DNA of 63,408 nt, filler included, from Octopus bimaculoides (GCF_001194135.2; 6 parts of 5 records of this genome joined end to end with filler, not necessarily neighbours in it); one strand, 5' to 3'; counted from the first letter of the whole stretch, positions 2,998 through 59,600 are shown. Made by a program: numbers and translations. Notes: a model not told the origin generated them from the letters alone.

Positions 2998-3234
2998 CAA
3001 TCCCTTTTGTGCTTCTTGTGACAGACAGGTGTTCAATTGTGTACTGGACAGTTTCAATGCTTTGCTATTGAGCATTTTGTAAAAAAAATTTTGTGCATGC
3101 TCATTTATATTGTAATTATTTTCTTTTGACTTGTCATATTTTGTGCCACATCTCGTGGGTGATCGGTAGCCATCTTGCTTCTGGTGCCACCACAATCTTT
3201 CTATTTTCGTGCTTCCGCACTCGAGGGGGAACCT

Positions 3235-3505
3235 TGTAGTGACGCATGGTTCTAGACGCCATGTTGGAACTTTCATCTGTGCATGCACCATGATTAGAGC
3301 CTTCTGAAGACCTGTTGGAAGCCCCTTATGTGCATGCGCAATCATCAGCAGCAGCTAGGGTTCGCCACCATTCACTCTCTTCGATCACGGCTTCCGACTG
3401 GGCAGGAGGACACAACTTAGAGCAGCTCTGTCGAGGATGGGACCCTTAATGGCAAGCAGCACCACAAGTCTGTAATAATGCCTTATTGCCTTGATGCCTA
3501 ACTAC
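3235..3505 (+). repeat. Putative 3' LTR of the second Gypsy element
   Basis: PPT-like GAGGGGGA precedes TGTAGT; possible ACTAC end near 3505. The right boundary is uncertain. Confidence 0.45.
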
Positions 3506-5931: not shown

Positions 5932-6110
5932 TTATGCTGGAGCACCGCCTTTAGTCGAGCAAATCAACCCCAGGACTTATTCTTTAGAAGCCTAGTACTT
6001 ATTCTATCGGTCTCTTTTTGCCGAACCGCTAAGTTACGGAGACGTAAACACACCAGCATCGGTTGTCAAGTGATGTTGGGGGGACAAACACAAACACACA
6101 TACACACACA

Positions 6111-6778: not shown

Positions 6779-6990
6779 GATGTACAGAGAATGGCAGTGA
6801 GAGCAGGAGATGCAATAGATGATGTTGGTAGAAGTGCAGGTGAAGGAGTCGGTGAGGCGAAAGGGTCGGTGATGGGTGCTGGTGAGGAGGGTGGTGTTGG
6901 AGAGGTAAGGGCAAGTGCGGCAGCGTGGGCAGGAGCAAGGGAACGAGCCAGGTTGGGAGGTTGGGTTGGGGAAACTCACACACGCACTTA
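6779..6990 (-). mobile_element. Penelope-like element, GIY-YIG endonuclease fragment
   Basis: PCSCPRCRTCPYL...FTCTSTNIIYCISCSHCHSLYI: the Cys motif followed by the first GIY-YIG block. Confidence 0.8.
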
Positions 6991-7342
6991 TAGTTGAAAC
7001 ATTATCTTACTCGTTATGATATATAACTGGTGAAGATATTTTCTGCCGGTTTCGCGCTCTCTATGTACTTAGACAATATTGACGGCATGAAACTTACTGG
7101 TCGGTAGTATAAAAACCTTTCTGTACTGCAGATGCCAATACACGTTGAGTGACTCAATGTTGATAAATACAAATGCAACGCAACTTGGCGAAATATTCGG
7201 AAAGTATTATAAACTTTTCCCGAGACAAAATAATAATTATTTACTATGCATTGATGTTAAGATTTGAGTGTATAAATGTAGTAGCCTACTTCAGAAATGG
7301 ACAGGACTACATTAAACGAATTTTCATTAATAACAGTAGCAT

Positions 7343-7559
7343 CCAAAGGGATGCTGAAAATTTCCTGGCTTTGGGTAAAGTAAGATGCTAGAGAATCAGT
7401 TAATTATGATTTTACTCAACATAATTCCCCTCTCAGATTTACACACTTACTGCAGTGGTAATTCAGTTTTTCTACGGCTTGTAAAACAACTGGAATGATG
7501 TCCAACCAGGACTTTCGTGATACCTTTAAAGCCAGGAACTTTTTGAGTACCCTCACGTA
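7343..7559. mobile_element. Mariner-type MITE
   Basis: Imperfect TIRs atgctgaaaatttcctggcttt / aaagccaggaactttttgagta ending CGTA; a related copy is at 54228-54443. Confidence 0.65.
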
Positions 7560-7567
7560 TATGAATG

Positions 7568-9240
7568 CTTTTACTCTTTTATACCTTTCAGCCCAAAGTT
7601 TGTGGGCATCCTGGAGCGTCGCCAGTTAATCACCTTTTCAATGGTCATTCTTATGCGACTGGCTTTCAGTGAAGGTGGTAGTTGGACACTGCCCCCCGTT
7701 TTGAAGTTTTTGCTACCTTGGGCAGCAGGAGCTCAATTTTCTTGAGAATATATAATGTAGAATGCTCGTGGCAAGATGTTAAATAGCCGTGCGCACTTGA
7801 ATCCGAAGCCATTGCAATACATAGACATCACTCTAGACGGCGTGGCTGTAATCTTTGGAACAGTGCAGTGATGTTCATTTTTGGGCGGCTATAGCTCCGA
7901 TGGCAACCCCTTTAGTATCCTACATACGTATTTCACTGCTTTCTCTCCCATCTTCGCTATAGGCAGTAGAGTTGTACTTCTTTCAGCGTCTCCCAGCAGC
8001 TCAGGTGTTCCAGTGATGGAATCTTTATGGTGTAGCACCGGTGAACTCTCTCAAGCTCCGCTTTAAAGTTGACACTGTAGGGTGATACAGTTGTTAACGG
8101 TAATCCAGACGGCTGAGGTAAAATGTCCTCTATAGTCCTGAAATTCCTGATAATCCATCTGGCCATTCACCTGTACATTGCCACTCTCTTGATGATATGC
8201 ACGTGAAACGTGGCGTTGTTGCTTATGTCAATCCCCGGATCACGCTCTGAACTTGACACTTAGAAAGCCGCATCATTTGTATCATTTCTTAAGCCCATTT
8301 ACATACGGCATCAAAGTCTTTCTGCAGAAAACTAGAATCGAAATGTCCCTTGACTGCTTGTACTACTTTTGTGTCGTCGGCATAGCTTAGTAAGTGTGTG
8401 TGTCTATCCGATATTATTTTGGAAAGAATTCCCATAAACCAGAGCAGTCCCAAAATAACCCCTTGGGGCACTCCACTCTCTGTTGCTCTTTCCATGGCTT
8501 CTACAACCTGGCTTCTGTCTTTAAAGAAATCATGTAACCAGTTTTCCAATTTTCCAACTAAGCTGCGTTTCCGTAGCTTGTGATATATCATTGCATGATC
8601 GACTTTATCAAAGGCGTTTGTAAAATCACATCTACCTTTCAACGATTCATTAGTTGTTTCAACACCCAAATATAATGATGAAGAAGCAGTGTGAGGCAGC
8701 TTCTTCCTGAGTGGAAGCCATGCTAGATGTCAAGGAGCTACTCATTCGTGCTCAGCTTCCCCTCGACAATGCCTTCCATGATTTTGTTAGAGATGCAGGT
8801 CTATGTTGCCAACCGCTCTGCTACCACCCTTATAGATAGGACGCATTATCCGATCTTTAACTTTAAGGAAGCTTTCGAAGAGGAACTGTAGCGGTCTTGC
8901 TAGAGGCCCCTTTACATTTCTTTACGAGGCTTTCTGGAAATCTGTCAGGGACTGGGGGTTGATGTTCTCTTCTTTTCATCGATGGCTCATATATTATCTC
9001 CGTTTCATCTACTTCGATGTAAACATTGACTGCCTTCTCTTCTTGTAGACCTGTTTTACCGAAAAACACATAAGGCATATCAGTTTACAAGTCTCTGAAC
9101 AGATTTGGGGAAACACTTTTGTATTGCACATCCAGTAATTCACTTATCCTCAGGCGGTCTTCAAATAGTGGCCAGTTCCAGTACAGTACAGAATTAGATT
9201 CTTTTACACATCTTTAGAAGACTTTAAAATTTGTCTTACA
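7568..9240 (-). mobile_element. CR1/L2-group LINE, RT and 3' end
   Basis: DFTNAFDKVDH, SGVPQGVILG and YADDTKV motifs; 3' tail ends in taaaagagtaaaag. Confidence 0.85.
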
Positions 9241-9970
9241 TCGTTTAAGGTCCTTGCTTCTTTCTCTGCCCTCTCCTTTTCATATATTTATTTATGATTT
9301 GTATATGAAATTAAAGTCATCAAGCAAAACGAATTAAAAATTTGTTTGCAGCGTATAAGATATTTTGTTTATTATTTACCACACATTGCCTATATTCACT
9401 CTGCAAAAACAACTGGGCAATGACATGGCGCTTCCAGTAATGTACAAAAATGTTATGTGATTCCACAGTTATATATTAGTATATAATTTAGTAACTTTAC
9501 TGTTACAATTTTATGGTTATATTACAAAATGAGCACGTGATTGTCATCATTTTCTTTGAAGATCGGTAGCGTATGGTTATAAAGTTTATGCGTTTATGTG
9601 CTACTATAATTTTATGATCTATATAATAAACTGCTTGTTCGTTCACTCGTTATGCTTTAGTTAGTTAGAGAGGTAGAAGTGGATTGAGTGAGAGAAAGAG
9701 AGTGTAAGTAGAGAAGGAAGTGAGTAAGAGATAGAAAAAAGTATGATGCCAAGTACATCGCGTGGTTTGTTGAAGGGAGAAGGGAAGAACGAGACAAAAA
9801 CAACAGTGAGAGAAAAGAGGAGGAAGAAGTGTCAATGACTTGTAGAGCGGGGAGGGAAAGGTAAAGAGAAATATATGTTTAAGATAGAATATTTAGTGAT
9901 GGGGTTAAAAAATGGCAGATAGAAAGAGGTGGACAGGGGAGAGGATTACATTGTGTACGTCTGTGAGAGA

Positions 9971-10026
<56 letters not shown>

Positions 10027-10429
10027 AGAGAGATTGAGTCAGATAGCGTTTATAATGTCAGAGTAGAGACACATCAACAGCAAGAAAACGTAGATATAAA
10101 CAAACATCTAGACTGAAGTGAAATGAAATGAGCTTTGTAACTGAAATCTATGATAACTATAATTGCGGTGGTATCGGTGTGTTCATAGTGAAAAGTATTT
10201 TCTTACTGAAATAAATCTATAATATTTTCCTACCTGTTCGATTACACTTTATTAAATTCGATCTAAAGTGGGATACAGTGCGTAAAGCCCAACCATACGC
10301 AAATGGCCAGTAAGTGTGTGGACTATGTTATATGGAAATATATGAAATATTGAAATATAGCGATAATCACAATCTAATTAATAGTAAATTAGATCTTAGA
10401 GCGTCATGTGTTCATAGGATTGCCTGTAC

Positions 10430-11700
10430 ATTTAAATACTTTAGAAGCAGCTAATTAATAATTATATAATGCTGTATTTATGGTGACATAACTTATTCGG
10501 GATGCCATATCATTCATAGCCTACTCTCTGTGATGTCGAAACCTATTTCATAATGCATTCTAGTGATCCTTCGTCCCTCTGATCTATAAACTTTTAATAA
10601 TTACAATATGTACTTACCCTTCCCAGTGGTGAATTTCTTCTATCATGGTTGATATATGATATATTTATTTCTTTAATGGATTCTTAAAATTTGCACCTGC
10701 CCTGAATATGAAATAAACTCTCTCTGATCTATTATTATTCTACCTCGATCATTTTCTTTAGATGTACTTTGGATATATCTTATAAACCCGTTTCCAAATG
10801 TAATTTTGTCTCTATTAAAAAAAGAATTGCTATATTTATATTTTATTTATTTTGCATTAACTATAATATTCCGGCTATAACTTTTTTATATACCAATACC
10901 ACTATAAAAAAACTTTTTAATTTTATTTCATCTCATATCCTTCCTTATATATTTTCATCTTTTTATACGTTCATATATTTTATAAATTTTTCTTGTATTT
11001 TATAATTTTAAAAATATTTTATATTTTGTATTTTATGCCTTTGTGTATCCTTTTATATATTTTCATGGATTTTATAGTTTATATTTCTATATATTTTTAA
11101 TTACGCATTATACCTTATAAATTCTTACATTTTATTTTTTAAATAATTTTATGCCTTTATATATCCTTTTATATACTTTGACAGCTCTTTTTATTGGGAG
11201 AATTTATACTTTTTTCGTAAAATTCACCAAATACTGTAATCTTATTTTATAATATTTTTTAATGATACATGATATTCATTCTGTGATTATAAGACTAAAT
11301 TTGTTTAAATCTTGTATCTCAATGTATTCCTTAATATATTTAATATCTCTAGTTTAATTACCCTGTACATTAGATCTCATTTTTTATTATATCATGGCTT
11401 TATGCACCCGTATTTGACGGAATGGTTTTAATACCAGTTTAATTGCATACTATAAGTATCTATTTATATTATAAATATTTGCGTTAAACCTTTACCATAT
11501 AATATTTTACCACGACATTTATGAAAATCTTAATATTTATCTTATATCTTAATATATCCCCTAACTAAAATTTTAAGTGTAACTTCTAGGCTCCATCTAT
11601 ATATTTAATTATATTTTACTTTAACATTATAAATATGCTAAGTTACAATGTGCTCCTTCCATTATTCTCTGAAATTATCTTCCATCCTAATTTCTAATAC
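10430..11700 (+). mobile_element. Possible ancient Penelope-like remnant
   Basis: Weak WLIYDIF and FLDV/ISYKP-like RT motifs followed by an extremely AT-rich stretch. Confidence 0.3.
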
Positions 11701-17868: not shown

Positions 17869-17906
<38 letters not shown>

Positions 17907-18233
17907 TCTGCCCTACATCATTATGCAACCAGTTGTTTTCCCACATGTCCGCACATTCTATTAAAATAAATCGGATGTGCGCAGACGCCAACAAATAGCG
18001 GACAATTTTGGGGTTGGGTAACATTTTCACCGTCACAAATTAATTATTCGGCAAGATGGATAACGGAAGGTAAGTTATTATGTAACTTTAAAAGACGGAT
18101 GAAAATGGCGTAAGGTTTTCTTCCTACACAATAATGAATTTTCTAATTCGACATCTTCTATGATGTACTATGTATTATAAAAACACAGAAAATCTCAGAT
18201 GACAGAATTTTATAAAATTGTTCTATAACTTAC

Positions 18234-19192
18234 CGATTTATTTAAACGAATTCCAATCCAGATCGTTGCGATCGAAAACATCACGTTCAAAGAAACCACA
18301 AACATAACGGTAGCGTGTACAGAGAATATATTTTTTAATGAATCATTAATAATTATGTAAGTTGCAACACAACATCCAGTAATAGAACTGAGTACGATAC
18401 ATCCTGAAACCAACTGAAATGATTCATTGTTTTACTCAGAGTTTTACTCAGTGTTTTACTCAGAGTATGATGAGTGTTACATATTTCTGGGATCTCTTTA
18501 TATTTCTTAAAGAAATACGAAGTATTAGATTGCTTTTCTTCTACGTATCTCTGAGCCTCCCTCGCTACTTTATTAAACTCGTACAGCAGTATAGTCCCAA
18601 TTGCAATATCCATATACCAATCAAACATGACAGACACAACTGATACAATTTTAAATACAATGTGCATCATTGAAATAATTACGTCAAGAAGTTTGTTAGT
18701 TTTGCTATGAATGACTGAGGAACTCCAAATATACTTATTGAAAAGCGGGAGAACGTGGTACATAGTAGGGATCACAATAACAGGTGAGAGTATAAATACA
18801 AGAGATGTAAAAGAAAATATTGCGTTATTATTATAAAACTTTCTATCGTCTTCTTCAACTGTATGTTTGGTGAATGCTTCGATTATTTGTTTGTCCTTAG
18901 GCTTTCTGAAGACTTTCGATGCACAGTAGAATGAAAGCAAACACTGGATAAATACTGAATAAATATATGCGGATATCACATCTGTTGCACTCTGATCTAT
19001 TTGTATCACACGAAAGAAATATATAACGGGGATTGCAATGAGATATACAGAATACATGATATAAAAGGCAGAGATACAGATAGTTTTACATTTGAGGGGC
19101 TTCAGTGATATATTCATAAATGATAGCTTAGAAATATTAACTTTCCCATAAAATTGTAATATTTTATAGAATCGTGTTTCTTTTAGTTCCAT
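18234..19192 (-). pseudogene. Gustatory-receptor-like exon GRL-1 (TM1-TM6), frameshifted
   Basis: Paralogous to GRL-2 and GRL-3. Starts MELKETRFYKILQFYG; a 12-bp triplication at 18428-18466 shifts the frame; the alternate frame continues to IGIRLNKS|GTAAGT. Length 959 nt is not a multiple of 3. Confidence 0.8.
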
Positions 19193-19560
19193 ACTTTTTG
19201 TAATTATGTATTCCTCAAAAGTTACTTATATATAAAGAACTAAACTCGTTGACATAAAACACGGAAGCTCTATTTCTTTGTAAGATCTCTACTTCATCAA
19301 TTTTGCCTCTATAATGAGTTGCGAGTGTTGCACCGCTTCGTCTGTCACGAAACAACTGGTAATAAAGAGGAGACGTGATAAAGTTTTTATATTCAGCCTT
19401 CCGCTTTGTTTGTATGTTGGTATTATTTTTAATTTATTGCTATGGCTGTAATATATAAATCAAATTGAATATTGCACGCTAATCTTCTTAAAAACGTATG
19501 AACCTTAGATGCAATACATTAAACTAATATTTTTGAAAGCATGTAAGAAGATTAATATCA
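19193..19560 (-). promoter_or_regulatory. Conserved 5' region of GRL-1 with acceptor-like site (CAG|19355)
   Basis: TTTATCACGTCTCCTCTTTATTACCAG; aligns with the upstream regions of GRL-2 and GRL-3. Confidence 0.55.
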
Positions 19561-19597
19561 ATATCAATATATATATATATATATATAGTATATAGTA

Positions 19598-19665
<68 letters not shown>

Positions 19666-19815
19666 CATCTATCTATATATTTGAGTTTGAGTAATTTTAT
19701 GTCTGTAAATGTAGGCTGATTGTGTGCATGTACATGTACACACACACACACACACACATATATATACATATATATATGTATATATGTATACATATATATG
19801 TGTGTGCATGTGTGC

Positions 19816-19859
<44 letters not shown>

Positions 19860-19860
19860 C

Positions 19861-21340
19861 TTTCTAGTTTCATGTCAGAGCTCTGGCCATGCTGGAGGAC
19901 AGCAGTTTTGCTACGCAGTTATTACTGGAGAGCCTAATTTAATATGTGGCATTTGGTGAATAAGACAGATTGATACCGCTACCCTCATTTGCACCTCTTG
20001 CCACGAGATAGGTTTATCTGGGACTCTCGAGAGGAAGAGGTCCAGTTTAGATTTGAAAACACCTACATTCACTTTGTGTAGGTCCCTCAAGCTCTTTGGC
20101 AGAATATTAAAAAGCTGTGGGTCCCTGAAACCCAGTTTTATTATCTGGTCCTGAAGCTCGATGGCTTTGCTGGGATCTTTGGTACTATGCAGTGTCGACC
20201 CGTTCTGGCATTTGTGTAGCTTTCAATGCCAACATTTGGCACAATTCCTTCCATGATCTTCCAGATGTAAATTACTGTATACCTCTCCCGCCTTCGCTCC
20301 AGAGAGTAGAGTTTTAGCTGTCTCAGCCTTTCTCAGTAGCTGAGCTGTTGCAATGAGACGATCTTCGTGACGATTCGCTGGATTGCTTCAAGGTTCGCTG
20401 TCAGTTTTACACTGTTGGGTGACCATAGCTGGGAGCAGTAATCGAGGCGGGTGAGGACGAATGTCCTTCAGAGGACCATCATTGTTTCCTTCTCTCTGGT
20501 TCTGAACGTTCTCAGGATCCATCCAGCCAGTTGTCTGCACGCTATCGCCATCCTGGCAATGTGGATTTGGAAAGAAGTATCATCACTCATGTCGATACCC
20601 AGGTCCCTCACTGATTTAGGCTCTGGGATTGAAATCCCCTGTGGACCAGTGTACCTTGTAAGTTTTGTACTCAGTTTTGGGCGCTGGTAGCGCACGGCTT
20701 GGAATTTTTCAGCATTAAACTGCATATTATTATCCTCAGCATATCTATAAATTGAGTCCAACTCCTGCTGCATGTGTGCAACATCGCTGGGGTTCTGTAT
20801 TTTCTGTGAGACTTGCGTATCATCTGCGTAGCTGGCAAGGGTGGCTATCCGGCAGCTGAGGGCATATCAAAAGCTTTTGCAAAGTCAATATATATTACGT
20901 CCACATTTGAGTTGTTGAGTTACTGTCTCAACACCCAGTGCTGTAGGAGCTGGGTCAAGCAGCTCCTACCTGGTCCAAAGCCATGCTGGGTATCACTCAG
21001 CGTGTCGTTTGCTTCACGAAACGCGATTAGTTTCCCTCTGATTATCCGTTCCATGATATTGCTGATGTGTGAAGTCAGAGAGATAGGCCTACGTTTTTTG
21101 GCATCTGCTCTGCTTCCTTATTTGTGGATTGAGCAAATTATTCCCGCCTTCAGTTTGCTTGGCAAACTACTATTTGCAAGAAAGCTGTAGAAGAGAATCT
21201 GCAGTGATTTCGCCAGGGTGCGAATACACGAGGAGGATTCCTAGGACACTATCAGGACCAGCAGTTGAGTGTGCGTCCAGCTCACCTATTGGTAAGTATT
21301 TCTTCTTCGCTAATGTCGATGTATTCCATCGTAACTGAGT
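19861..21340 (-). mobile_element. CR1/L2-group LINE, RT fragments and 3' end
   Basis: YADDT-type motif, QQELDSIYRYAEDNNMQFNAEKFQ and RDLGIDMS; same family as 7568-9240. Confidence 0.85.
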
Positions 21341-21418
21341 CGCTGTTCATATATTATTAGGGATAAAAATCCAAATTTACAGGAGTATCTTTTCCCTAAA
21401 ACTATGTATATATATATA

Positions 21419-21452
<34 letters not shown>

Positions 21453-21749
21453 NNNNNNNNNNNNNNNNNNNNNNNNNNNNNNNNNNNNNNNNNNNNNNNN
21501 NNNNNNNNNNNNNNNNNNNNNNNNNNNNNNNNNNNNNNNNNNNNNNNNNNNNNNNNNNNNNNNNNNNNNNNNNNNNNNNNNNNNNNNNNNNNNNNNNNNN
21601 NNNNNNNNNNNNNNNNNNNNNNNNNNNNNNNNNNNNNNNNNNNNNNNNNNNNNNNNNNNNNNNNNNNNNNNNNNNNNNNNNNNNTATATATATATACACA
21701 CATACATACATACTTATATTTATATATATATATATTTACATTTATATAT

Positions 21750-23080
21750 ATAAATTGATCAGGGCCCCACCAAAGCCATCTTTAGTCCCGGCCCTTTCTA
21801 CGATGTATCGCATAAGGTGGAGGTTGTTGTGGATAGACCTGCTCGGGATTGCTCAAGTTTGTGCTTCCCCGATCAGATTACCAACTACAAACGCCAGCCT
21901 TTTCACTAACACCTTGGGTAAAATCTTAAACTCTGTATTTTGCAAGGGTATGGGCCGAAAATTTCCAAGCACGTCCCCATTATCAGTGTCCTTTCTCAGC
22001 AGTGTTACTACACTCCGGCTAACAGCACTAGGAATTCTCCCATTCTGCTACCAGTTACTGTAGACATCTGCGAAGAAGCTGCCAAACAAATCTGGCATGA
22101 AAATATGGAATTCGTTGGGCAACCATCCAAACCAGGTGATTTGGGACTTATGAAATCGCTTATTACCTCCCGTGTTTCAGAGGCTGTAATCAGCCTTTCG
22201 CAGAATCTCACGTCCGTCATCGAGAAACATGGTAGGCTGTCTAGGCACGAAGTAAAGTTCGCTACCGTCGTCGACCCATCACCCTCCCCAAATTGCCGTG
22301 CAAAGTGCTGCCGGAAAGTCGCACAAACCTGCTCAGAACCGAGTAGCACACGTCCGTCCCGATCCATCAAAGACTTGATTGTGGGTTTATTTCCACGTCG
22401 CGTCTCTACTCTTCGGGCCCATCGGACGGCTTTAGTTCCTTCGTGTTTTAGCGCACCGGCCTTAGCTTTGACATTCGTGTTTCGCCTAAAGAAATGGACA
22501 AGGGCCATTCTCGCCACTAACACGTCGGCCGCGATGCCTTTACTTAATAGCTTCTAATTTGCCAACTAGTTCTCTCTCTGATCTATTTCTTTCTATTGCT
22601 AAATCTTTGCTAAACACCATCGATTCCACTCTAATCGCTCCTTTCAGAGCGATCCACCGCCGGCTGTTGACGATAGCCCCAGTCAGCTACCGCTTAACTA
22701 GTTCACTAATCGGGTCCCTGTAGTCTTTTCCGGGTCCTATTTAAATCGAGGGGCCCTATTTAAATCGACTGAGAATATCACAAGTTTGTGATCTGTGCAG
22801 CCGACCAATTTAAATATATCCTCTTACCTATCACATACTCTTTCTAAATACGATCTGGATGACCCGCTGTGGTTGCTCCATGTCCACACTGGCACATCAG
22901 GGAAAATCTAGTCGGTACCTGTCAGAAAACTGGAAAGTCCTGAGCAGATTTTCGAGACTTTTACACTCCCTTTTACAATGTACTAAACCCACACAATCCT
23001 TTCGTGCGTCCTTCCAAAATACTATTCCAGTCCCTCACTAATACTAAAGTGCGAAACGTTCCCAAGAATGTTTCTAGACA
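21750..23080 (-). mobile_element. Tx1/L1-clade LINE remnant (linker and RT N-terminus)
   Basis: KSPGLDG, LQNTEFKILPKVLVKRL, QTCAIPSRSIHNNLHLMR and GGALINL. Confidence 0.8.
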
Positions 23081-23084
23081 CCTA

Positions 23085-24790
23085 AAGAACTCTGGCCTTC
23101 TAGCCCCTGTTGGGGCATAAACTGCCATTCACTTCCAGGACCACCGCAGAAATCATGTCTCTGGCATTCTGCTTTGAAGCCAGTATTATTCTTATTCGCA
23201 GCAGATACTCTCTGTTTTGTCTTTTCCTTCATGTCGTTGTTTAATTTCATCTGCCTCAAGTATTCTCAGGTATCTATAGCTGGAATGAGGTTGAATTATC
23301 TTAATCATTTCACCACTTGGAAAGCTTATGTCTTCTGTCCTGACAAGCTTTCGTCGTCTCACCACCATCGTAACACATTTTGAGAGCCCAAACTCCAACT
23401 TGATATCATTGGAGAAAATCCGCACAGACTGGACTTGGCTGTCTAGTTCTGCATGGCTTCTTGTGACTAGCTTCAAGTCGTCCATGAGCAGCAAGTGGTT
23501 CAGTTTTCCCTTACCTCTTCCTGGGTCATACTCCAACTTTGGTTTCTGAAGTATTTCACTCAACAGGATAATTCCCAGCACAAAGATCAGTGGGGACCCA
23601 CTGTTTCCTTTGGAAGATTCTTCTCTTGATTGTCGCCTCTCAATGATTCCCTACTGTCAATACTTGATTCCCTGCTGTCGATTCTCTTCTGCAATTCCAT
23701 ATTGTTTCATATAAGGCTTCTCATGTTTTCTGCTACTCCATACATTTCCATTGTTATAATCCAGGAATGCTGACTGAAAAATCCCAAAGGATAATGTCAT
23801 TTTAATCTTCAACGACTGGTTCGGGGGTGATATTCATACCAGTAAGCAGGAGTGCCGATTTTGTAATGCTTACATATTTTCCAGTGTAAATACTGTCCTA
23901 TCCAATTGTGGCGACTTTTCTATTCGTTCGGTGTCAGCATAAGTCATCCCAACACGAGATGATCTATTGTTTCGTCCAATGTGTCACAGATTCTACATTT
24001 AGGGTCAGAACCGTTTTGAAGAACGTTATCCTGGTAGTTTTTGTAAGCAAGCTATTATCTTGTGCAGCCAATATGAAACCTTCAGTCTCTGCTTTCCGTC
24101 CTGAACTTCTCAACAACTGATACGTTGTTGCTTGGTCTACATCAGCATTGTGGCTTCGAAGTATATACTTTCTATCCAGACATTTCTGGCTCCAACGCTC
24201 CTCAATTTGTTTCTGCTTGTTCTTTTTATTTGCAGTATGTTTGATCCGTTTTGCTTCTTTGGTGGCGGTGGTTTCAGGTTCTTCAACTATTTCAGGGATA
24301 ATACCAAGTTCTCTTGCGAATTTGCAAGATTCCTTGACAATAAAATATGAATTTTCGCTGCTTTTGTGTTTGCGTACAAATCGCAGCGTCCAGTCCTCTG
24401 TATTAGATAAGTACCTGCTCATTGCTATTGTGGAGGTGTTATAGCACAGTCCTACCTGCATCATTCCTCTTCTCCCATTACTACTAGGTAGGTGCAGACG
24501 ATCAGCGTCTGCATTTGGGCGGTGCTTGTTATTAGATGTTAGTAGTTGTCTTGTCTTACTGTCCAGGCGTTGGAGTTCTCTAAGATTCTAGTTAATGATG
24601 TAAAAACCGTATTGGAATACTGGAAGTTCTAGTGTGTTAATGGCTTCGATACGATTTTTCGAGCTGAGCTCAGTTTTTAGTATGAGTCATATTTTTCTGT
24701 AATACTATTTTCGTATTTCTTTCTTCATAGTAGCATGTTGTATGCCATCTCCTTCGTTTACGACGGACTTGTGTCGGCGAAAAACGGAAA
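23085..24790 (-). mobile_element. R4/Dong-like LINE remnant
   Basis: LNHLLLMDDLKL, DIKLEFGLSKC, YRYLRILE, LHLPTSSNGRRG-like segment and ETEGFILAAQD. Confidence 0.8.
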
Positions 24791-25355
24791 AGTAGTTTTT
24801 AAAAAGGCCGTCCTATACTGAAAGTGAAAAGACAGGGCAAGGAATATCGACTTGATCCACGAGCTACAATAACAACACCACCGACACACTCACCCAAATC
24901 CCAACAACAAAAGCAATTCTTACTCATTCAACCACAACCACGATTATACGAAGCACCAAAACAGAAACAAATACACGAACAGAAACAACAATCAAAAGAA
25001 ATACTCGTACAACTTACCAGAGAACCCGAACGCCTCATCAACTTCAAGTCATTCGCAAGAGCAACAGCGATCTGATGCAAGAAGTAGGGAAGAACACAAA
25101 TATCCATACAAGAGGAGTAGGATTCCACGATCTTCTGTCGAAAACATGACAGAAGCTGATAAAAACTGATAGAAGCACATACCTAGAAAATTAAAAAAAA
25201 AATACCCAAAAGACATTCAGCCGTTTAGGCTAAAGCCGGACAAAAGGATATTAGGAAGGCCATTACATTAATGATTCAGACGAAGTAGCTGAATCGACCG
25301 GCCTTCTTACAATCCAAGATAAGTAACCTTCTTCCATTTTGTTTCTCCGATAAAC

Positions 25356-26070
25356 ATGGTCGTCTTCAGAGTGGTGTGTGTGAATGTCCGTAGTCTGGGG
25401 TCAGCTTGGAAGCTAGGTCACTTGTTAAACAACCTTAGGTCGCTCGATTTGTATGTGGCTGCAATTCGTGAGACAAGGATTTTTAATGCACAAGCACTAG
25501 CGTCCATTTTCGATGACTATGAGATATATTCATCGTGTGGTCTGTCTACGGGAGGCTCTGATAAGCTGACTATGGGGGTGCTCTGATAAATTTGGATCTA
25601 TCAAAAGCATTCGATACGGTTAACCATCGCTACTTGGAAGTCGTCCTAAGAGCCGGCGGTTTCGGGCCCGTTTTCAGACGCTGGATCACTGCAAACACAG
25701 TGGCGTCTGTTGAGTGGTCAAAGTAAACAGCCACCTATCGGAACCGTTTGGCATCGCACGCTCGGTAGTAGTAACACTGCTACCCTGTCTGGTGGCAGGG
25801 TAGCAGTGTTACTCCGAAAATTCTTAGATATCGAAGTAAAGGCAATCTTCTTGGACCCAGGTAGCAGGTTGGTGGTCGTCAATGTGTATGGTAGCGAAGT
25901 TGGTGCGCTTAGACTGATGATCGTCTATGTGCCAAGAGGAGCTGGAAGGCCAGGATTCTTCAGGTGTCCAGAAACATTCCTGGAAACGTTTTGCAGTTTA
26001 GTACTTGTAGTGGACTAGAATAGTATCTTGGATGCACGGATGTCTAGGTCTAGGACATAGAAGGAGAGGG
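25356..26070 (+). mobile_element. Rearranged Tx1/L1-clade LINE fragments (endonuclease N-terminus plus an RT piece)
   Basis: VVCVNVRSL...AAIRETR, GGRVAVLLRK, GALINLDLSKAFDTVNHRYL. Confidence 0.75.
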
Positions 26071-26125
26071 TGCTACGGATTTAAAATATATATCAAATGG
26101 ATTACTTCTCGCTAATATTCTTAAA
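26071..26125 (-). other. Orphan copy of the GRL upstream flank (vestige of a fourth unit)
   Basis: tgctacggatttaaaatatatatcaaat is identical over 28 nt to 28805-28832, and similarity continues to ...cttaaag. Confidence 0.75.
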
Positions 26126-26485
26126 GTGGAGGCGCAATGGCCCAGTGGTTAGGGCAGCGGACTCGCGGTCATAGGATCGCAGTTTCGTTTCCCAGACCGG
26201 GCGTTGTGTGTGTTTATTGAGCGAAAACACCTAAAGCTCCACGAGGCTCCGGCAGGGGATGGTGGCGAACCCTGCTGAACTCTTTCACCACAACTTTCTC
26301 TCACTCTTACTTCCTGTTTCTGTTGTGCCTGTAATTCAAAGGGTCAGCCTTGTCACACTGTGTCACGCTGAATATCCCCGAGGACTACGTTAAGGGTACA
26401 CGTGTCTGTGGAGTGCTCAGCCACTTGCACGCTAATTTCACGAGCAGGCTGTTCCGTTGATCGGATCAACTGGAACCATCGACGT
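26126..26485 (+). mobile_element. SINE family C, 3'-truncated
   Basis: Near-identical to 37102-37490 and 43559-43944. Confidence 0.9.
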
Positions 26486-26739
26486 TTGTAACCGTGAATT
26501 TTATAGTTTATATTTGTTTTTATGTCTCTTCTTTTCTTATTAATATTCATCATTGGTATTTTTTTATTCTTTTAGTTGTTTCAAGCATTTGACTGCGGCC
26601 AAATATTAAAGATACCCTATTCAAATACAGATTAGGTTAACATTTTCGAAGCCTAGCAGAATCTGGTATTGATATTTCGTTCGTAAATGACCTGTTTGAA
26701 CAACAGTATTCCTATCATTTTATGAGATTTCCTAGATGC

Positions 26740-26791
<52 letters not shown>

Positions 26792-26880
26792 AGCATTTCG
26801 CCCGGTGTGCTAACGATTCTGCCAGCTCGTCGCCTTATACTCATAAATATATATATTTGAGTGTGTATGTGTGTGTGTGC

Positions 26881-26931
<51 letters not shown>

Positions 26932-27639
26932 TGTGTGTATGACCGTGTGTAGCTGTGTGGTAATGTATAAACACTCTAAAAAAAAACATACATTTGTATG
27001 CATAAACATTCAGAAGGAGTTAAAGAAAGAGGAAAATCACAAAAGGAGGAGACGAAGGAGGAGGAGGAAGAGGAGAAGCAGAAGAAAGAATGAAAGACTA
27101 TTAGGAAATACAGAAACATCAGAAAAGCATTCGTAAATTGTTACTGAAATTATCACAATGTCGGTCTGTTGTGTCCCGAAAATAAAGCCTTTGTTGAGAC
27201 TGGACAATGCTGCGTCTATTGCCAATTGTTTTCTAACTCCTCACTCAAGCCTTCTCCATTCATTGGATAAGCGAGATTTTGTGTGGCGTCCCTAAGACGC
27301 TTTACGATGAATAGTAGCAAAGTCCGACGACCAAGAGAGAGAAAGTATGAATGAATGAAGGAATAAGAAAATGAGTAGAATGTCGGTAGTGATAATAGTC
27401 ATAGTGGTAAAGACGGAAGATTTTGGTTCATTATTTCACCTTTATCCAATGTTTAAATTTGGGAAACGAAAGTGGCAAGACGGACATCGGAAGGAAAGAT
27501 ACCAAACAACTTTAAAAACTGCAGATATTGGCGTCACAGAGTCTTTCAATACGTTAAGGAATATGCTAATTCGATATCTTTTATGATGGAATACTAGATA
27601 TAGAGAAAAACTTATTTGACAGAATTATATAAAACTTAC

Positions 27640-28560
27640 CGATTTATTTAAACGAACTCCAATCCCCACCATTGTAATCAAAGCCGCCATGATGCTAGAA
27701 GCTGCAAACATAACGGGAATGTATATAGAGGATATATTCTTAGATGAAACATTTATAATTCCGTAAGTTGCAGTACAACATATAGGAATACTACTGAGTA
27801 CGAAATATCCCGAAGTCAACTGAAATGATTCATTTACTAAATTCAGTATTCTACTCAGGGTATCGTGTAAGTTACATATTTCTGTGATCTCTTTATATTT
27901 CTTAAAGAAATACGAAGTATTAGATTGCTTTTCTTTTACGTACTTCTCAGCCTCGCTCGCTACTTTATTAAACTCATGCTGCAGTGCAATCCCAATTGCT
28001 ATATTGATATACCAATCAAATAGCGCGGATATTATTGATATGCTATTGAATAAATTGTCTATCATTAAAATTGGTAAAAAATTTGTTGAGAAAATGCCAA
28101 TATCGTTCATGCAAAACGGCAATACATTCATAGTAAGTTGAATAATTACAGGTAGCAATACAACTAGAAAAAGTGTCAGAAAAGAAAACGTGTTGTTGTT
28201 ATAGAATACTTGATCGTCTTCTTTAATTGTAAGTTTGGTGAAAGCTTGGACAATTTCTTTGACTTTAGATTTTTTGAAGGTTTTCATTAGAAAAAGCAGC
28301 GAAAGTAAAATATGGAGAAATATCCCGAGAATAAATGCAAACTTCATTTTATTTCCGTGAGGAAGCATTTGTTCAGTAGCATCAGCATATTTAATGAGGT
28401 CTGCAAACAGATATACAGAATACAAGATATAAACCGCATAGAAACACATAGTGTTACATTTGACAGACTTCAGGGATATGTCAGTAAATAACATCCTAAA
28501 AATGTTATTTTTCTCATAGAATTGCAGTATTCTATAGAATCGTGTATCTTTTAGTTCCAT
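27640..28560 (-). CDS. Gustatory-receptor-like exon GRL-2 (TM1-TM6, 307 codons, open)
   Basis: ATG at 28560 (MELKDTRF) matches the paralogs; the track's start at 28629 is a GTG. Six hydrophobic segments; ALQHEFNKV and HDTLSRILNLVNESF motifs; ends VGIGVRLNKS|GTAAGT, phase 0. Confidence 0.85.
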
Positions 28561-28940
28561 AATTTTAGTAAGTAAATATTCGTCAAAGGTTACTGCTATA
28601 TAAAGAGCTAACCCGTTGACATAAGACACACGAGATCTATTTGTATCTACGATGGTTACTTCTTCAATTTTCCCTCTACAATGTCTTGAGAGCGTCGCAC
28701 TCCTTCGTTAGTCACGAAAGAACTGGAAATAAAGAGAAGACGCGATAAAGCTGTTATATAATGTCTTCTACTGTGTTTATATGTAGGGATTATTTCAAAT
28801 CTGTTGCTACGGATTTAAAATATATATCAAATTGAATGCTGCTCTCTAATCCGCTTAAAGCCTATGAATCTTAGATGATTTATATTAAACCATCACTTTA
28901 TAAAAAGTAGAAGAGAATGGATATCAACATCAATATATAT
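28561..28940 (-). promoter_or_regulatory. Conserved 5' region of GRL-2 with acceptor-like site (CAG|28722)
   Basis: CTTTATCGCGTCTTCTCTTTATTTCCAG, 162 nt upstream of the ATG. Confidence 0.55.
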
Positions 28941-29242
28941 AAATAAAATAAAGAGGGTAGAAATTGATATTAATCGATTCACATCAATTTAAACCAGTGC
29001 CTTGGTATATTTAAAGCGACAGACTACGCTGTGAGTTGCAGATATTTACATTCGTAAATATTAACAATGAAACCATGGTTCGTAGGTAACCGTTTTATTT
29101 TGTATATTTTCATTTGTCTTGCTCATTTTTACATTCTGGCATTTTGCTGAAATTTTCTTGAGAACACACTCTTTGCGGTAAGGCGATTTGACGTCTATTC
29201 TTAGCATATTAAGAATCCACTTCGGTGGTTATTCATCTTGTA

Positions 29243-29292
<50 letters not shown>

Positions 29293-29401
29293 ATTAAAAC
29301 AGTAGGGTAAAAAATTGGATATTAATTAATATCAATTTAATACCAGGGAACAAGCAGATTGAAAGAATCAAGGAGATTCAGAAAAATATCTGAGATCTCA
29401 A

Positions 29402-29581
29402 AGGATCATTGTATATGTATATATAAAGGAGACCACTAGGTGGACTGTTAATGTGCTAGAAGAAGCTCACATGTAATGTGTCTACTAATGTGTCTTAGTA
29501 GACACATTACATGTGATCTTCTTCTAGCACATTAACAGTCCACCTAGTGGTCTCCTTTATATATACATATACAATGATCCT
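29402..29581. repeat. Near-perfect ~180-bp palindrome abutting a gap
   Basis: ~87-bp arms with one mismatch around a TGTGTC loop. Confidence 0.9.
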
Positions 29582-29761
29582 NNNNNNNNNNNNNNNNNNN
29601 NNNNNNNNNNNNNNNNNNNNNNNNNNNNNNNNNNNNNNNNNNNNNNNNNNNNNNNNNNNNNNNNNNNNNNNNNNNNNNNNNNNNNNNNNNNNNNNNNNNN
29701 NNNNNNNNNNNNNNNNNNNNNNNNNNNNNNNNNNNNTATATATATATATATATATATATAT

Positions 29762-31408
29762 CAGTGGTACCTTGACTTACGAATGTCCCAACTAACGAGT
29801 TTTTCGAGATACGAGCCTTCTCTTGGCCGAGTTTTTTTTTGCTTTGAGCTGCGAGCTAAAATTCGAGTTAGGAGCTAGCTTCAGACCCCTCACTGCTAGT
29901 CAGCGTAGCGTACGTCACAAAGAACGCCGTAATATCCGCCCACCATTCCGTGCCTCAGTCGACAGCTAGACATATATGCAGGCTAGCAAGTGCGAAGATC
30001 ATTAGTAGATCGATAGCTAGACAGACATGCTCGTTAGTAAGTGAGATCGTTAGCTAGGCTGGTAGTAAACTGCTTACTTACTGTTTGCAGGCTACAGAAG
30101 CATCAGTGATGTGCTCGCCGTTGTGGTTGTGGTTATTTTGCAGAACTTCGTTTTTCCATCATGGGTTCGAAGAAAATGAGTGTGAAGGACAGTGGGGAGA
30201 AGTAGAAAAACGTGACTAAGTATGCATATAGTTGCCATGGCAAAGCATTACGAGTATATTAGTTCAAAGATCTGCACCATACTGAAGCAGAAGGAATCGA
30301 TAAAGGATATAACGCCAGCCAAGGGCATGAAAATAATATCTAAACAGTGGATATCTATCCGTGAAAATATGGTGAACCTGCTGATAGTGTTGTTAGCCGA
30401 GGAGAAGCTCGCAGGAGATAGAGTGACGGAGGCTATAATCTGCTGGAAGGCAAGAGCTATTTATGCTGACTTGTTGCAGCAGACCCCTGGCACTTCTACA
30501 TACAAGGCACCAGGCGAGCCGTTTAAAGCGAGTCGGAGCTAGTTCGAGAATTCACCTCCTTGTCAGGCATGGTGAGGCAGCAAGAACGAATATGAAATGG
30601 ATTTTGAAACACTCGAACCCGAAGCAGCAGTGGTGGAGGAGATTGCATCCTTCGGCAAGTCCATGGCCCTGGGCGAGTATGAAGATGATATCAATGATCT
30701 CATCGAGGATTACACCGAGACACTAACAACAGAGGAGCTAAAGGAGCGATAGACGCAGCAGCACACGGAGGTTTTGCAGGAAATAGGTGACTCAGAGGAG
30801 ATGGAGGCGGTTATCTCTACAAGTGAAGTAAAGGAAATGTCGAGGGATGTGGGAGAAACTTTCAGACTTTATTCAAAAGAGACACTCATGAAAATTGCAA
30901 CCGGGCGTGCGACGGCGCTATTTAATGACACTTGCCAAACGCATTTCGGAAACATTCTGAAAGGAAGGATGAAGCAGACCTTATTGGACAAGTACTTTAT
31001 CTAAAATTCCTGCAGATGAAAGTGAATAAAGCGTGGTGAGAAGGGCAAAAATCAGATAATAAAATTCAGTAACTCAATTCAGCATTTCTCCTCCACCTCC
31101 GTCAGTATCCTCAAGTCGTCTGATCTCCAAGGTAAATGCTGTACATCATACTTAATAAAACCAGTTTATTACAGTACATTCTGTTCCATTGTTTTTTTAA
31201 AATACAATATTCGTTATTTAGTACATTTTTCTTATTTAAAAACACGCAACAACAAAGAAATGGTATGTTTTTTTTTTGTGTCGGGCGAGCGGAACGGATT
31301 AATGGTATTTAGATTCATTTCAATGAGGAAATTTGATTTGACATACGAATAATTTGAGTTACGAGCTAGTTACGGAACGAATTAAACTCGTAAGTCAAAG
31401 TACCACTG
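29762..31408 (+). mobile_element. Tigger/pogo DNA transposon, internally deleted
   Basis: TIRs CAGTGGTACCTTGACTTACGA / TCGTAAGTCAAAGTACCACTG followed by TA; CENP-B HTH-like SKICTILKQKE...ICWKARAIYADL...FKASRS and C-terminal ATALFND..HF. Confidence 0.9.
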
Positions 31409-31444
<36 letters not shown>

Positions 31445-31448
<4 letters not shown>

Positions 31449-31730
31449 TTATTACTTGTTTGACTGCGGCCATGCTGGAGCACCACCTTTAGTCGAGCAA
31501 ATCGACTCCAGGACTTATTCTTAGTAAGCCTAGTACTTATTCTATCGGTCTCTTTTGCCGAACCCCTAAGTTACGAGCACGTAAACACACCAGCATCGGT
31601 TGTCAAAGCGATGGTGGGAGGGACGAATACAGGCACACAAACGTATACATACATACATACATACATACATACACACGTGTGTGTGTGTGTGTGTGCGTGT
31701 AGATACAACGGGCTTCTTTCAGTTTCAATC
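31445..31730 (-). mobile_element. SINE family A, 5'-truncated
   Basis: Tail ggccatgctggagcacc, internal (TACA/TG)n, and part of the head. Confidence 0.85.
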
Positions 31731-32328
31731 TACATCAAAATATTTAGAAAGATGCACGAGCAAGTGCTAATAATAAAGTGAATATTGTCTCGTAGAAAAC
31801 TATTAATACATGAATAATTGTATCTCAAATTATTACCTTATATGAAGTTCATTTCCGTTTTCGTTCCGTGCTCTTCTAAATACGAAGCCATCGTTGACAC
31901 CGCCCAATAGTGTTCCCATATAAATAGTGTTGCAACCCCTCGCCTAATCCTTAAACGATATTTTCTGCGGCTTCCCAACCACACATCGTAACACGAATTG
32001 TAGCTAGGAAGGAAGAGAGTGACAGACAGATAGATAGACGGACAGAGACAGACAGAGACAGAGAGACTGAGAGACAGAGACATAGAGCAAAAGAGTGGGG
32101 TCAGAAAAACATTTTAGACCATTATTTCAGGTCTGTCTTATTTCTACAACAGGGGAAAAAATGGCCAGATAGACATCAGATAATGGAAAACAGGCGAAAA
32201 TGACGTAATGTGATCTATCTACGTATTAACGAATCTGTTAATTCCACATCTTTTAAGATGTAAGACGCATTATAAAAATACAAATAAAATCAAATAAGAG
32301 AATTTTATAAAATTATTATATAACTTAC

Positions 32329-33270
32329 CGTTTTATTTAAACGAACTCCAATCCAAACCATGGTTGTCAAATACATCAAGCAAATAGATTCCGAAGTTGT
32401 AACATAGATGTATTCATGAGATTTATTTTTCAAGGAATCATTTATGATTCTGTAAGTAGCAATACAACTTCCAGCAATACCACCGAGTACTAGAAACCCC
32501 GAAGACAACTGAAATGATTCATTTACCAATTTCAGTATTCTACTCAGAGTATCATGTGAGTTACATATTTCTGGAATTTCTTTATATTTCTTAAAGAAAC
32601 ACGAAGTGTCTGATTGCTTTTCTTTTACATATATCTGAGCTTCATTCTCTAATTTATTAAACTCATAAATCAGTGCAAACCCAAATGCAAAGTTCATATA
32701 GTAATCAAATAGAACGGAGGCAGATAATATAGAATAAAATATAACGTGTATTGTGAAAATTGGTACATGATACACATTAGTGATTTTTACAGAAATTCTC
32801 AAGGAACTCTGAGAGCTTATAATGAAAAACGAAGGAACGAAAATCATAAGATAAACAATAAGAGGCAATAACACAAATGTATAAAGTGATATACCGGAAA
32901 ATATTAAACTAGAATTATAGAATTTTCTATCATTTTCTTCAATTTTAAGTTTGGTAAATGCTTCGATTATTTCTTTGTCGTTAGATTTTCTGAAGATTTT
33001 TATCAGACAATAAATTGAAAGGAATCCCTGGAGATATATTGTGTAAATATATCTAAATATTTCACCGCTTGTGCTTTGATCCATTTGTATTATATCAATA
33101 ATAGGTCTCGCAAGCAGATATATACAATACACGATATAACAACCATAAAAGCAGATTATGCGAGGCTTCAGTGATTTCAGTGGTGATAGGTTCATAACTG
33201 ATATACCGAAAATATTAATCTTCCGATAGAATTCCAGCATTTTATAGAAGCCTGTGTCCTTCAGGTCCAT
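32329..33270 (-). CDS. Gustatory-receptor-like exon GRL-3 (TM1-TM6, 314 codons, open)
   Basis: Starts MDLKDTGFYKMLEFY; ALIYEFNKL, HDTLSRILKLVNESF and CIATYRII motifs; ends VWIGVRLNKT|GTAAGT, phase 0. Confidence 0.85.
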
Positions 33271-33460
33271 AATTTCCGTAATTCAATATCCTTCGCCGGT
33301 TACTTCTATGTGAACAGCTAAACTATTTGACATAGGCTGCGCAAGGTTAGCTCCCTTGTCAGGTTGCAAGTTCTTCAATTTAACTGTTACACAATGCTGC
33401 ACTGTTTCATGTGTCAGGAAAGAACTAACAATGAACGTGAAACGAGATAAAAGACATATA
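33271..33460 (-). promoter_or_regulatory. Conserved 5' region of GRL-3 with acceptor-like site (TAG|33424)
   Basis: TTTTATCTCGTTTCACGTTCATTGTTAG|TTCTTTCCTGAC aligns with the GRL-1 and GRL-2 acceptors. Confidence 0.5.
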
Positions 33461-33589
33461 TATATATATATATANNNNNNNNNNNNNNNNNNNNNNNNNN
33501 NNNNNNNNNNNNNNNNNNTTAATTAATTAANNNNNNNNNNNNNNNNNNNNNNNNNNNNNNNNNNNNNNNNNNNNTTCTTTTCTTTTTTT

Positions 33590-58796: not shown

Positions 58797-59600
58797 ATGG
58801 TTCTCGGAACACCTCCGAGACATCTGACTCAGCAATGACACCCCGGTCTCACGCCATTTCCGCTCTACCGGTCACTCTTTGCAACACCTGTCTGTGTTCG
58901 GATTGTCCTTGCACAGGGGCCATCCGGACTCCCGTCTTCGCTGTGAACAGGGATTAATCTTCTCTCTTCGCTCGTTTGCGTCACATGGGCTCAAATCTCC
59001 TCCCCTCTACATCTAACTCTTCACCCCTCTCCTCTCTTCCTCTCACACCTACTTCCTCCCATCCACATCTCTTCTCTTGCTCCGACTGCTACTTCTTCTC
59101 TTCACTCCTACCCTCCTTCTCTTTTCTCTTCACTCTTACCTACCTCTTCCCTTCCAACCCCTCCCTCATAACCCCACTCCTACACAATCCAACCCCACTT
59201 TCCCTATCCATTCCCAACTCATCCATTACACTCACTCCCACATACCCCACCTCTACACCCACCCTTGCTTTCCCCACTCTCGCCTCCCCCACATCCCAAC
59301 ACCACCACACCACACACCACCACACCATACACCACACACAACACACCACCACATCACATCATACCACCGCGCTCACACTAGCACTGACCACGTTCCAGCA
59401 CCCACACCATCATCCACACGCCTACACATGCACACACGTACATATCAAGGTCACCCACCCTCTTCCATACGCACATACATGCTCTCTTATACACACGCAC
59501 GTGCACCTTCGTTTTGGGATCACCACAACTTTATTATCCCCCTTCTTCCTAGCTCTCCTGTGTGACCCCTCTGTTCAGCATAATCTAGGCAATTTTTTGT
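58797..59600 (+). mobile_element. Penelope-like element: GIY-YIG C-terminus and 3' region
   Basis: RFSEHLRDI..NDTPVSRHFRSTGHSL...RLRCEQGLIFSLRSFASHGL. Confidence 0.8.

Follow-up and report, generated by a model that had tools for sequence, protein, structure and literature searches.

We describe a tandem array of long exons in Octopus bimaculoides that probably forms an internal segment of an octopus gustatory receptor-like (GRL) locus, in which variable exons would be joined singly to shared exons encoding intracellular loop 3 (IL3) and the seventh transmembrane segment (TM7). The window, i.e. the whole stretch of DNA analysed, comprises 63,408 nucleotides (GCF_001194135.2; six parts of five records joined end to end with filler), and coordinates are counted from its first letter; the real sequence considered here occupies positions 17869-33474 (15.6 kb, hereafter the piece). 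Its minus strand carries three paralogous units, which we name by coordinate as V-33k, V-28k and V-19k. An initial annotation, in which the same units were called GRL-3, GRL-2 and GRL-1, had proposed alternative N-termini spliced to constant C-terminal exons. This proposal is supported by homology, in the layout and isoforms of a paralogous locus of O. sinensis, and by synteny with a gapless region of O. vulgaris. The comparisons thus support the presence in a cephalopod of a variable-exon gustatory receptor (GR) locus of the Drosophila Gr39a/Gr28b type.

Three long exons ending at a common splice donor

Two of the units are intact long first exons. V-33k (32329..33270, minus strand, ATG at 33270) is open for 314 codons and ends in RLNKT, while V-28k (27640..28560, minus strand, ATG at 28560) is open for 307 codons and ends in RLNKS. 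Each encodes an N-terminus followed by six hydrophobic segments (TM1-TM6), with a long loop between TM4 and TM5, and each is immediately followed on the same strand by a phase-0 GTAAGT donor (32328-32323 and 27639-27634, respectively). The third unit, V-19k (18234..19192, minus strand), keeps its ATG at 19192 and its RLNKS|GTAAGT donor, and contains a frameshift with a premature stop at 18353-18355. All three open with M-[ED]-L-K-[DE]-T and close with ...CGTTTAAATAAA(T/A)CG|GTAAGT, that is, with G[VI]RLNK[ST] followed by the phase-0 donor. The donor positions given earlier (18234, 27640 and 32329) prove exact for every unit, and the accompanying claim that the units end at a common RLNK[S/T] codon with GTAAGT, lacking the part from the third intracellular loop to TM7, holds in three of three. 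The long open frames are not due to chance, since stop-free runs in shuffled versions of the 921-nt exon average 61 codons and reach at most 135.

When the piece is taken together with three loci of two other species, all 16 variable-type exons with a scorable 3' end have the donor at this codon (15 GTAAGT and one GTGAGT). It is kept even between exons that are only 35-40% identical in protein sequence, whereas no two copies agree in the bases beyond it or in their read-through tails.

The lesion in V-19k maps to a 12-mer tandem array (GTTTTACTCAGA, 3.2 copies; 18429..18466, minus strand), within which the exon has a net gain of 11 nt relative to its paralogs. Past this shift the correct frame is open again as far as the donor. 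Deletion of one 12-mer copy still leaves a -1 shift, and hence the lesion is not a simple repeat-copy slip of the assembly; barring an assembly error at the array, V-19k is a pseudo-exon. The frameshift needs the gain of one 12-mer plus the loss of a single nucleotide.

At the DNA level the units are 68-72% identical to one another over 1.1-1.5 kb. This homology extends at most about 390 nt 5' of the ATG and about 180 nt beyond the donor, and then ends. Because it ends so shortly beyond the exon, the duplicated unit (~1.5 kb) is an exon with short flanks and not a gene. The initial annotation had reached the same view, which is borne out both by these limits and by the lack of C-terminal exons in the spacers described below.

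A single constant exon set in a paralogous locus

When a profile of the units was run exhaustively with HMMER against 1.84 billion representative proteins, it recovered only 17 relatives, all with E<1e-10; a word-indexed protein search with V-28k returned nothing. The named relatives come only from O. sinensis, O. vulgaris and O. bimaculoides, and are labelled 'uncharacterized' or 'hypothetical'. The remainder are open reading frames from short sequencing-run contigs, which pass the donor and continue into intron sequence. Four NCBI models (XP_036361419.1, XP_036361423.1, XP_036361421.1 and isoform X3 of O. bimaculoides LOC106880719) instead continue past RLNxS/RLHAA into a 71-residue tail of the form VHSITQSIHYMQFQ...ILVFLNRLTTESHGIDVGGCFVITPSSTLT-MIGSFITYILVVIQTKPL, which ends in TYILVVIQT. 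Between genes and between species this tail is 90-92% identical; for the long exons the corresponding figure is only 35-60%.

We mapped the family proteins onto the gapless 59.6-kb O. sinensis locus LOC118764608 (L001). Five or six variable exons start there at 1457, 6109 (partial), 10001, 16398, 27576 and 42321, and those with a family-type 3' end, which the partial copy at 6109 lacks, close with RLN/HLNxS|GT[AG]AGT in phase 0. They are followed by a single set of three short exons, C1 (46673-46741), C2 (47649-47738) and C3 (49533-49586 plus the stop codon), which span 2.9 kb and encode IL3 and TM7. These exons have AG acceptors; V|C1, C1|C2 and C2|C3 are all phase-0 junctions, and the last exon comprises 18 codons. 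Isoform X1 (XP_036361421.1) corresponds to the exon at 10001-10954 and isoform X3 (XP_036361423.1) to positions 28302-28511 of the exon starting at 27576; both map at 99-100% identity to these different variable exons and carry an identical 71-residue tail. Hence, as judged from this locus, the Gr39a/Gr28b-type arrangement appears to be real in the family.

Another variable-type exon begins 9.8 kb after the constant exons (59371-59586), suggesting a head-to-tail succession of complex loci of the family along the O. sinensis chromosome. Between LOC118764607 and LOC118764608, 6 of the 71 tail residues are different, which amounts to at least two C-terminal sets in that species. Three 'isoform X3' models (P0028, from O. 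bimaculoides LOC106880719, and P0011, which is XP_036361419.1, and P0016) start within a variable exon, at TM4, TM5 or TM6, and one X3 model has a 19-residue N-terminus unrelated to the family; these models hint at internal starts or at extra 5' exons spliced into the variable exons.

A divergent branch of the gustatory receptor family

The TYILVVIQT of spliced family members agrees with the GRL TM7 motif (T/S)Yhhhhh(Q/K/E)(F/L/M) (PMC7746228) at three of its four fixed positions, the last residue being T and not F/L/M as in the GRL consensus. With the Pfam family 7tm_7 (PF08395; gathering score 26.6 bits), XP_036361419.1 scores 27.4 bits and the TM4-TM7 part of XP_036361421.1 35.0 bits, while the TM4-TM6 regions of V-28k and V-33k, when hypothetically joined to the tail from O. 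bimaculoides, reach 29.3 and 28.3 bits, respectively. The gathering score is passed only by constructs that run from TM4 to the C-terminus, and a full-length O. sinensis paralog (P0029) has no 7tm_7 match.

Structural comparisons point in the same direction. The 13 best Foldseek matches in the PDB to an AlphaFold model of P0029 (pLDDT 67.7) are exclusively mosquito and aphid odorant receptors (ORs), Orco, MhOR5, BmGr9 and Gr43a. A model of the V-28k exon of the window (pLDDT 69.2) matches Gr43a, Gr64a, OR5, AaegOR10 and AgamOR28 with TM-scores of up to 0.64, as against 0.29 or less for unrelated ABC transporters. For both models, all matches with a probability of at least ~0.96 are insect OR, Orco or GR proteins; a profile search against PDB sequences gave chance ferritin matches only. 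The GRL label of the initial annotation is justified by these two lines of evidence, i.e. 7tm_7 scores above the gathering threshold, obtained when the tail is included, and the Foldseek matches to GR, OR and Orco structures. The family is thus an octopus-restricted and very divergent branch of the GR/GRL family, and its members are presumably chemoreceptor channels.

Search for C-terminal exons near the units

Regular expressions for TY-5-QF and looser forms found nothing relevant in the piece, and tblastn of the true 71-residue family tail against it gave no exon (best E 0.75). These searches agree with the earlier observation that neither spacer holds a TY-hhhhh-QF exon. The two spacers do contain assembly gaps, both of them N runs: one at 29582-29736, of estimated length 155 nt and in or beside (TA)n, and one at 21453-21684, of estimated length 232 nt and inside a (TA)n run. 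Since both lie in spacers and not in exons, they raise no issue of reading-frame continuity.

A gapless region of O. vulgaris (OX597821.1; L003) is collinear with the piece. Positions 33462-31732 of the piece align with 1569-3306 of this region (85%), 31413-30593 with 6791-7642 (87%), and 28945-26928 with 9612-11633 (84%). A tblastn search of L003 at E<=10 detected no C-terminal exon anywhere in it, whether between the orthologs of V-33k and V-28k or in the 11.9 kb downstream of the latter. Given that the collinear DNA has none, a TM7 exon inside the gap at 29582-29736 is excluded, and one inside the gap at 21453-21684 is unlikely, as none follows the V-28k ortholog for 11.9 kb. A separate TM7 exon for each donor, for instance in a gap, which had been named as the contrary outcome, is found neither in the piece nor in collinear L003. 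It also follows that V-33k can have no C-terminal exons of its own and, if it is used, must splice across V-28k.

Selection and turnover of the array

The V-28k ortholog in L003 is intact and 70% identical in protein sequence, while that of V-33k (L003 1758-2700; 78%) is frameshifted in O. vulgaris and intact in the window. Nucleotide identities of the orthologous exons and their flanks are alike (~84-85%), and the piece is ~85% identical to O. vulgaris in non-coding DNA. The probability that the V-28k frame would be open under 16% neutral substitution is 0.0024, with indels uncounted, and it is open in both orthologs. The conservation of the donor, as against the variability of the read-through tails, together with the frame kept open in two species, argues that the variable exons are used. 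Conversely, the dN/dS of the V-28k ortholog pair is 0.82 and that of paralogs 0.5-0.9, and pseudo-exons are frequent (V-19k, the O. vulgaris counterpart of V-33k, and several fragments in the region described next); given these high ratios and common pseudo-exons, part of the array is decaying.

About 106 kb upstream of L003, on the same strand, a further O. vulgaris region (L002) contains at least nine additional variable-type exons; many fragments and one exon with an early stop are also present in it. Overall, the O. vulgaris array comprises at least 12 variable-type exons over ~197 kb from L002 to L003, all on the same strand. No C-terminal exon was detected in the 68 kb of L002, and no C-terminal set in the 91 kb sampled of the ~197-kb array. 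At L003 12961-13262, after the V-28k ortholog, lies a degenerate remnant of a third unit, and V-19k is without an intact ortholog there. The frameshift in the V-33k ortholog and the reduction of the third unit to a remnant indicate that the two octopus species have gained and lost exons differently.

The family is also mis-annotated in the O. vulgaris genome. The models CAI9727304.1, CAI9727303.1 and CAI9727301.1 (L002 10001-58380, L002 63234-63733 and L003 10001-12771) are chimeras that join pieces of different variable exons, or the first 43-46 codons of a variable exon, to unrelated sequence. Because of such chimeras, cephalopod GRL counts are likely to be underestimated.

Proposed mechanism and its alternatives

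These observations suggest how the locus might function. Each unit would serve as a long alternative 5' exon with its own ATG, encoding the N-terminus and TM1-TM6 and ending in a strong phase-0 donor. TM1-TM6 form the ligand-binding part in insect GR and OR structures. Whichever variable exon a transcript began with or was spliced into, all those downstream would be skipped, and the exon would be joined to a single common set of three short phase-0 exons for IL3 and the pore-lining TM7 (TYILVVIQT), a set that would have to be located past the left end of the piece. Several receptors with different sensing halves and one pore and assembly module would then arise from the locus. The array probably grew by tandem duplication of ~1.5-kb units, between which transposons were subsequently inserted, spreading them apart. 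On this reading V-33k and V-28k are usable and V-19k is dead. The use of one shared C-terminal set by the array and the possession of a separate promoter by every variable exon may be surmised from the comparisons made above.

Several points weigh against this reconstruction. The claim for the window locus rests on homology to L001, which is paralogous to the window array and not orthologous (35-47% amino acid identity), and the isoforms of O. sinensis are annotation-level NCBI models. Only 365 nt of the piece follow the last donor, so that any shared exons of the array itself would lie outside it. The window exons by themselves match no Pfam family, exact look-ups of their open reading frames returned no contigs, clusters or annotated product, and guessed products joining them to C-terminal exons are absent from the protein collection. 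Lastly, one of the three units is a pseudo-exon, and the high dN/dS ratios and frequent pseudo-exons noted above add to these difficulties.

Some of these points could be explained if the units were decaying orphans, i.e. copies of variable exons without usable C-terminal exons, which produce no receptors and whose open frames are recent leftovers. The dN/dS of 0.82 and the like identities of exon and flank are in keeping with this, as are the frameshifts in one of three window units and in the V-33k ortholog of O. vulgaris, the fragments and early-stop exon of L002, and the want of an annotated product containing the window exons. We nevertheless regard it as unlikely: two frames of more than 300 codons are open in DNA of 68% A+T, that of V-28k has stayed open in two species despite ~16% divergence (P ~0.0024), and GTAAGT is present in all copies while the adjacent intron bases vary. 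Furthermore, high turnover and pseudo-exons are normal in working alternatively spliced GR loci (PMC6175461). The units might also be separate genes, each with private IL3/TM7 exons in a gap or further off and interleaved. Two spacer gaps whose lengths are estimates and the occurrence of at least two distinct C-terminal sets in O. sinensis (LOC118764607 versus LOC118764608, 6 of 71 residues) leave some room for this, but a constant set of 2.9 kb, as in L001, would have to fit gaps estimated at 155 and 232 nt in (TA)n runs, and gapless L003 has no C-terminal exon between the orthologs or in the 11.9 kb after them, making such an organization highly improbable.

It is conceivable, too, that the donor is ignored and that translation stops nearby, giving six-TM proteins without TM7. 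In-frame stops do occur four and seven codons past the donors, and all database proteins from short sequencing-run contigs are read-through open reading frames. These, however, are mechanical calls on short intron-bearing contigs, and spliced annotated models exist; the tails vary in length (4 to ~80 codons) and sequence while the donor hexamer is conserved. Moreover, a six-TM product would be without the pore helix, which in Orco and GR structures is provided by TM7. We consider read-through improbable in the extreme. The remaining alternatives concern how a variable exon is chosen. In all three units and in the O. vulgaris orthologs, the ATG is preceded at a distance of 151-163 nt by an acceptor-like pyrimidine tract with YAG (28722-28701, 19355-19334 and 33424-33403 on the minus strand, upstream of V-28k, V-19k and V-33k, respectively), as might be expected if the units were mutually exclusive internal cassettes, selected by splicing behind a common non-coding 5' leader and a single promoter. 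The site was not found before the more distant variable exons of L001, its conservation may reflect recent duplication, and for comparable insect GR loci the published description is one of long first exons in an array (PMC6175461). Being confined to a young subfamily, it is uninformative, and we judge internal cassettes very unlikely; such an arrangement is in any case a variant of the favoured explanation and not a contradiction of it. On its own, the acceptor-like site could mark a 5' leader splice site. A more extreme form of the favoured explanation is a single giant locus in which dozens of variable exons with their own promoters compete for one IL3/TM7 set by stochastic promoter choice of the protocadherin kind. 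This is quite unlikely; if it were true, each chemosensory cell might express one receptor from one gene.

Comparison with known systems

The documented GR pattern is one of long first exons with three shared short final exons across three phase-0 introns (PMC3011837; PMC6175461). As in Drosophila Gr39a and Gr28b and cockroach Gr60a-m, the octopus loci have tandem long exons on the same strand, each with its own ATG and covering the N-terminus to TM6. Likewise, the insect loci and L001 share three short shared final exons across phase-0 introns (compared by phase). In both groups conservation is highest at the C-terminus, and the arrays include pseudogenic members (PMC3011837; PMC6175461). The octopus family differs in its cephalopod host, in having variable exons so divergent that Pfam fails to recognise them by themselves, in having relatives only in Octopus, and in its exons being 4-15 kb apart and separated by transposons, in an array that is perhaps much larger.

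Clustered protocadherins and UGT1A offer a further parallel, in that tandem variable first exons are joined to one constant set and the intervening ones are skipped, but they encode unrelated protein families. The variable exons of protocadherins are each served by a separate promoter containing a conserved sequence element, and are chosen stochastically. Unlike in protocadherins, no family-wide conserved upstream element was found in the octopus loci: a search for an upstream motif common to the window units and the distant variable exons of L001 found none, conservation being at the subfamily level only.

Octopus chemosensation is mainly explained by chemotactile receptors derived from nicotinic receptors. 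The present family points to a second, unannotated and fast-evolving octopus receptor family of the insect GR type, one that ordinary sequence searches barely detect and whose loci gene predictors mis-model. There are reports of GRLs from molluscs in general (Robertson 2015 and Saina et al. 2015, both cited by PMC7746228). The searchable, partial literature yielded no description of cephalopod GRLs, or of variable-exon splicing in a non-arthropod GRL. GR-type diversification, in which the sensing half is swapped and the pore exons are kept, would be present outside arthropods. This raises the possibility either that the three ancestral phase-0 introns predispose the GR family to repeated invention of the scheme, or that the splicing scheme itself is old.

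Flanks, spacers and repeats

The ~200-390 nt of 5' flank duplicated along with the exons carry a TATA-like box 42 nt before the ATG in two of three units. In the V-28k flank (28561..28945, minus strand), TATATAG begins 42 nt ahead of the ATG and an acceptor-like pyrimidine tract with CAG is found 162 nt ahead of it; this flank may represent a promoter or a leader acceptor. The co-duplicated flank of V-19k (19193..19579, minus strand) is homologous to it; the piece ends within that of V-33k (33271..33474, minus strand), whose proximal part is homologous to the other two. On the 3' side, also on the minus strand, the co-duplicated start of the V-28k intron (27474..27639) stops read-through after four codons (VSFI*) and that of V-33k (32196..32328) after seven (VSYIIIL*). 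The V-19k intron start runs to the end of the piece (17869..18233), with homology to the other flanks at 18050-18233, (AT)n at 17869-17905 and no C-terminal exon.

The piece is A+T-rich, G+C varying from 27 to 48% along it; an Rfam search of the piece gave no match. V-33k and V-28k lie 3.77 kb apart, and V-28k and V-19k 8.4 kb. The first spacer (28946..32195) consists of repeat debris, microsatellites, a palindrome and a gap, is partly collinear with gapless O. vulgaris DNA, and, like that DNA, has no C-terminal exon. Of the contents assigned to it initially, the microsatellites and the palindrome stand, while Pfam did not confirm a Tigger element in the segment at 30.2-31.0 kb. The palindrome (29402-29581; 180 nt, 95.6% inverted self-match) adjoins the gap at 29582-29736; it may represent either a repeat able to form a hairpin or an artefact that arose in assembling the edge of the gap. 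The second spacer (19580..27473), equally without a C-terminal exon, holds reverse-transcriptase fragments, SINE-like sequence, microsatellites and a gap. The two reverse-transcriptase fragments (23195-23650 and 20471-20866, minus strand) match RVT_1 with E-values of 2.9e-5 and 5.5e-4, under the gathering score. The SINE-like sequences, at 26400-26870, flank (ATA)n and (GT)n microsatellites and presumably resemble an abundant octopus SINE (short interspersed element).

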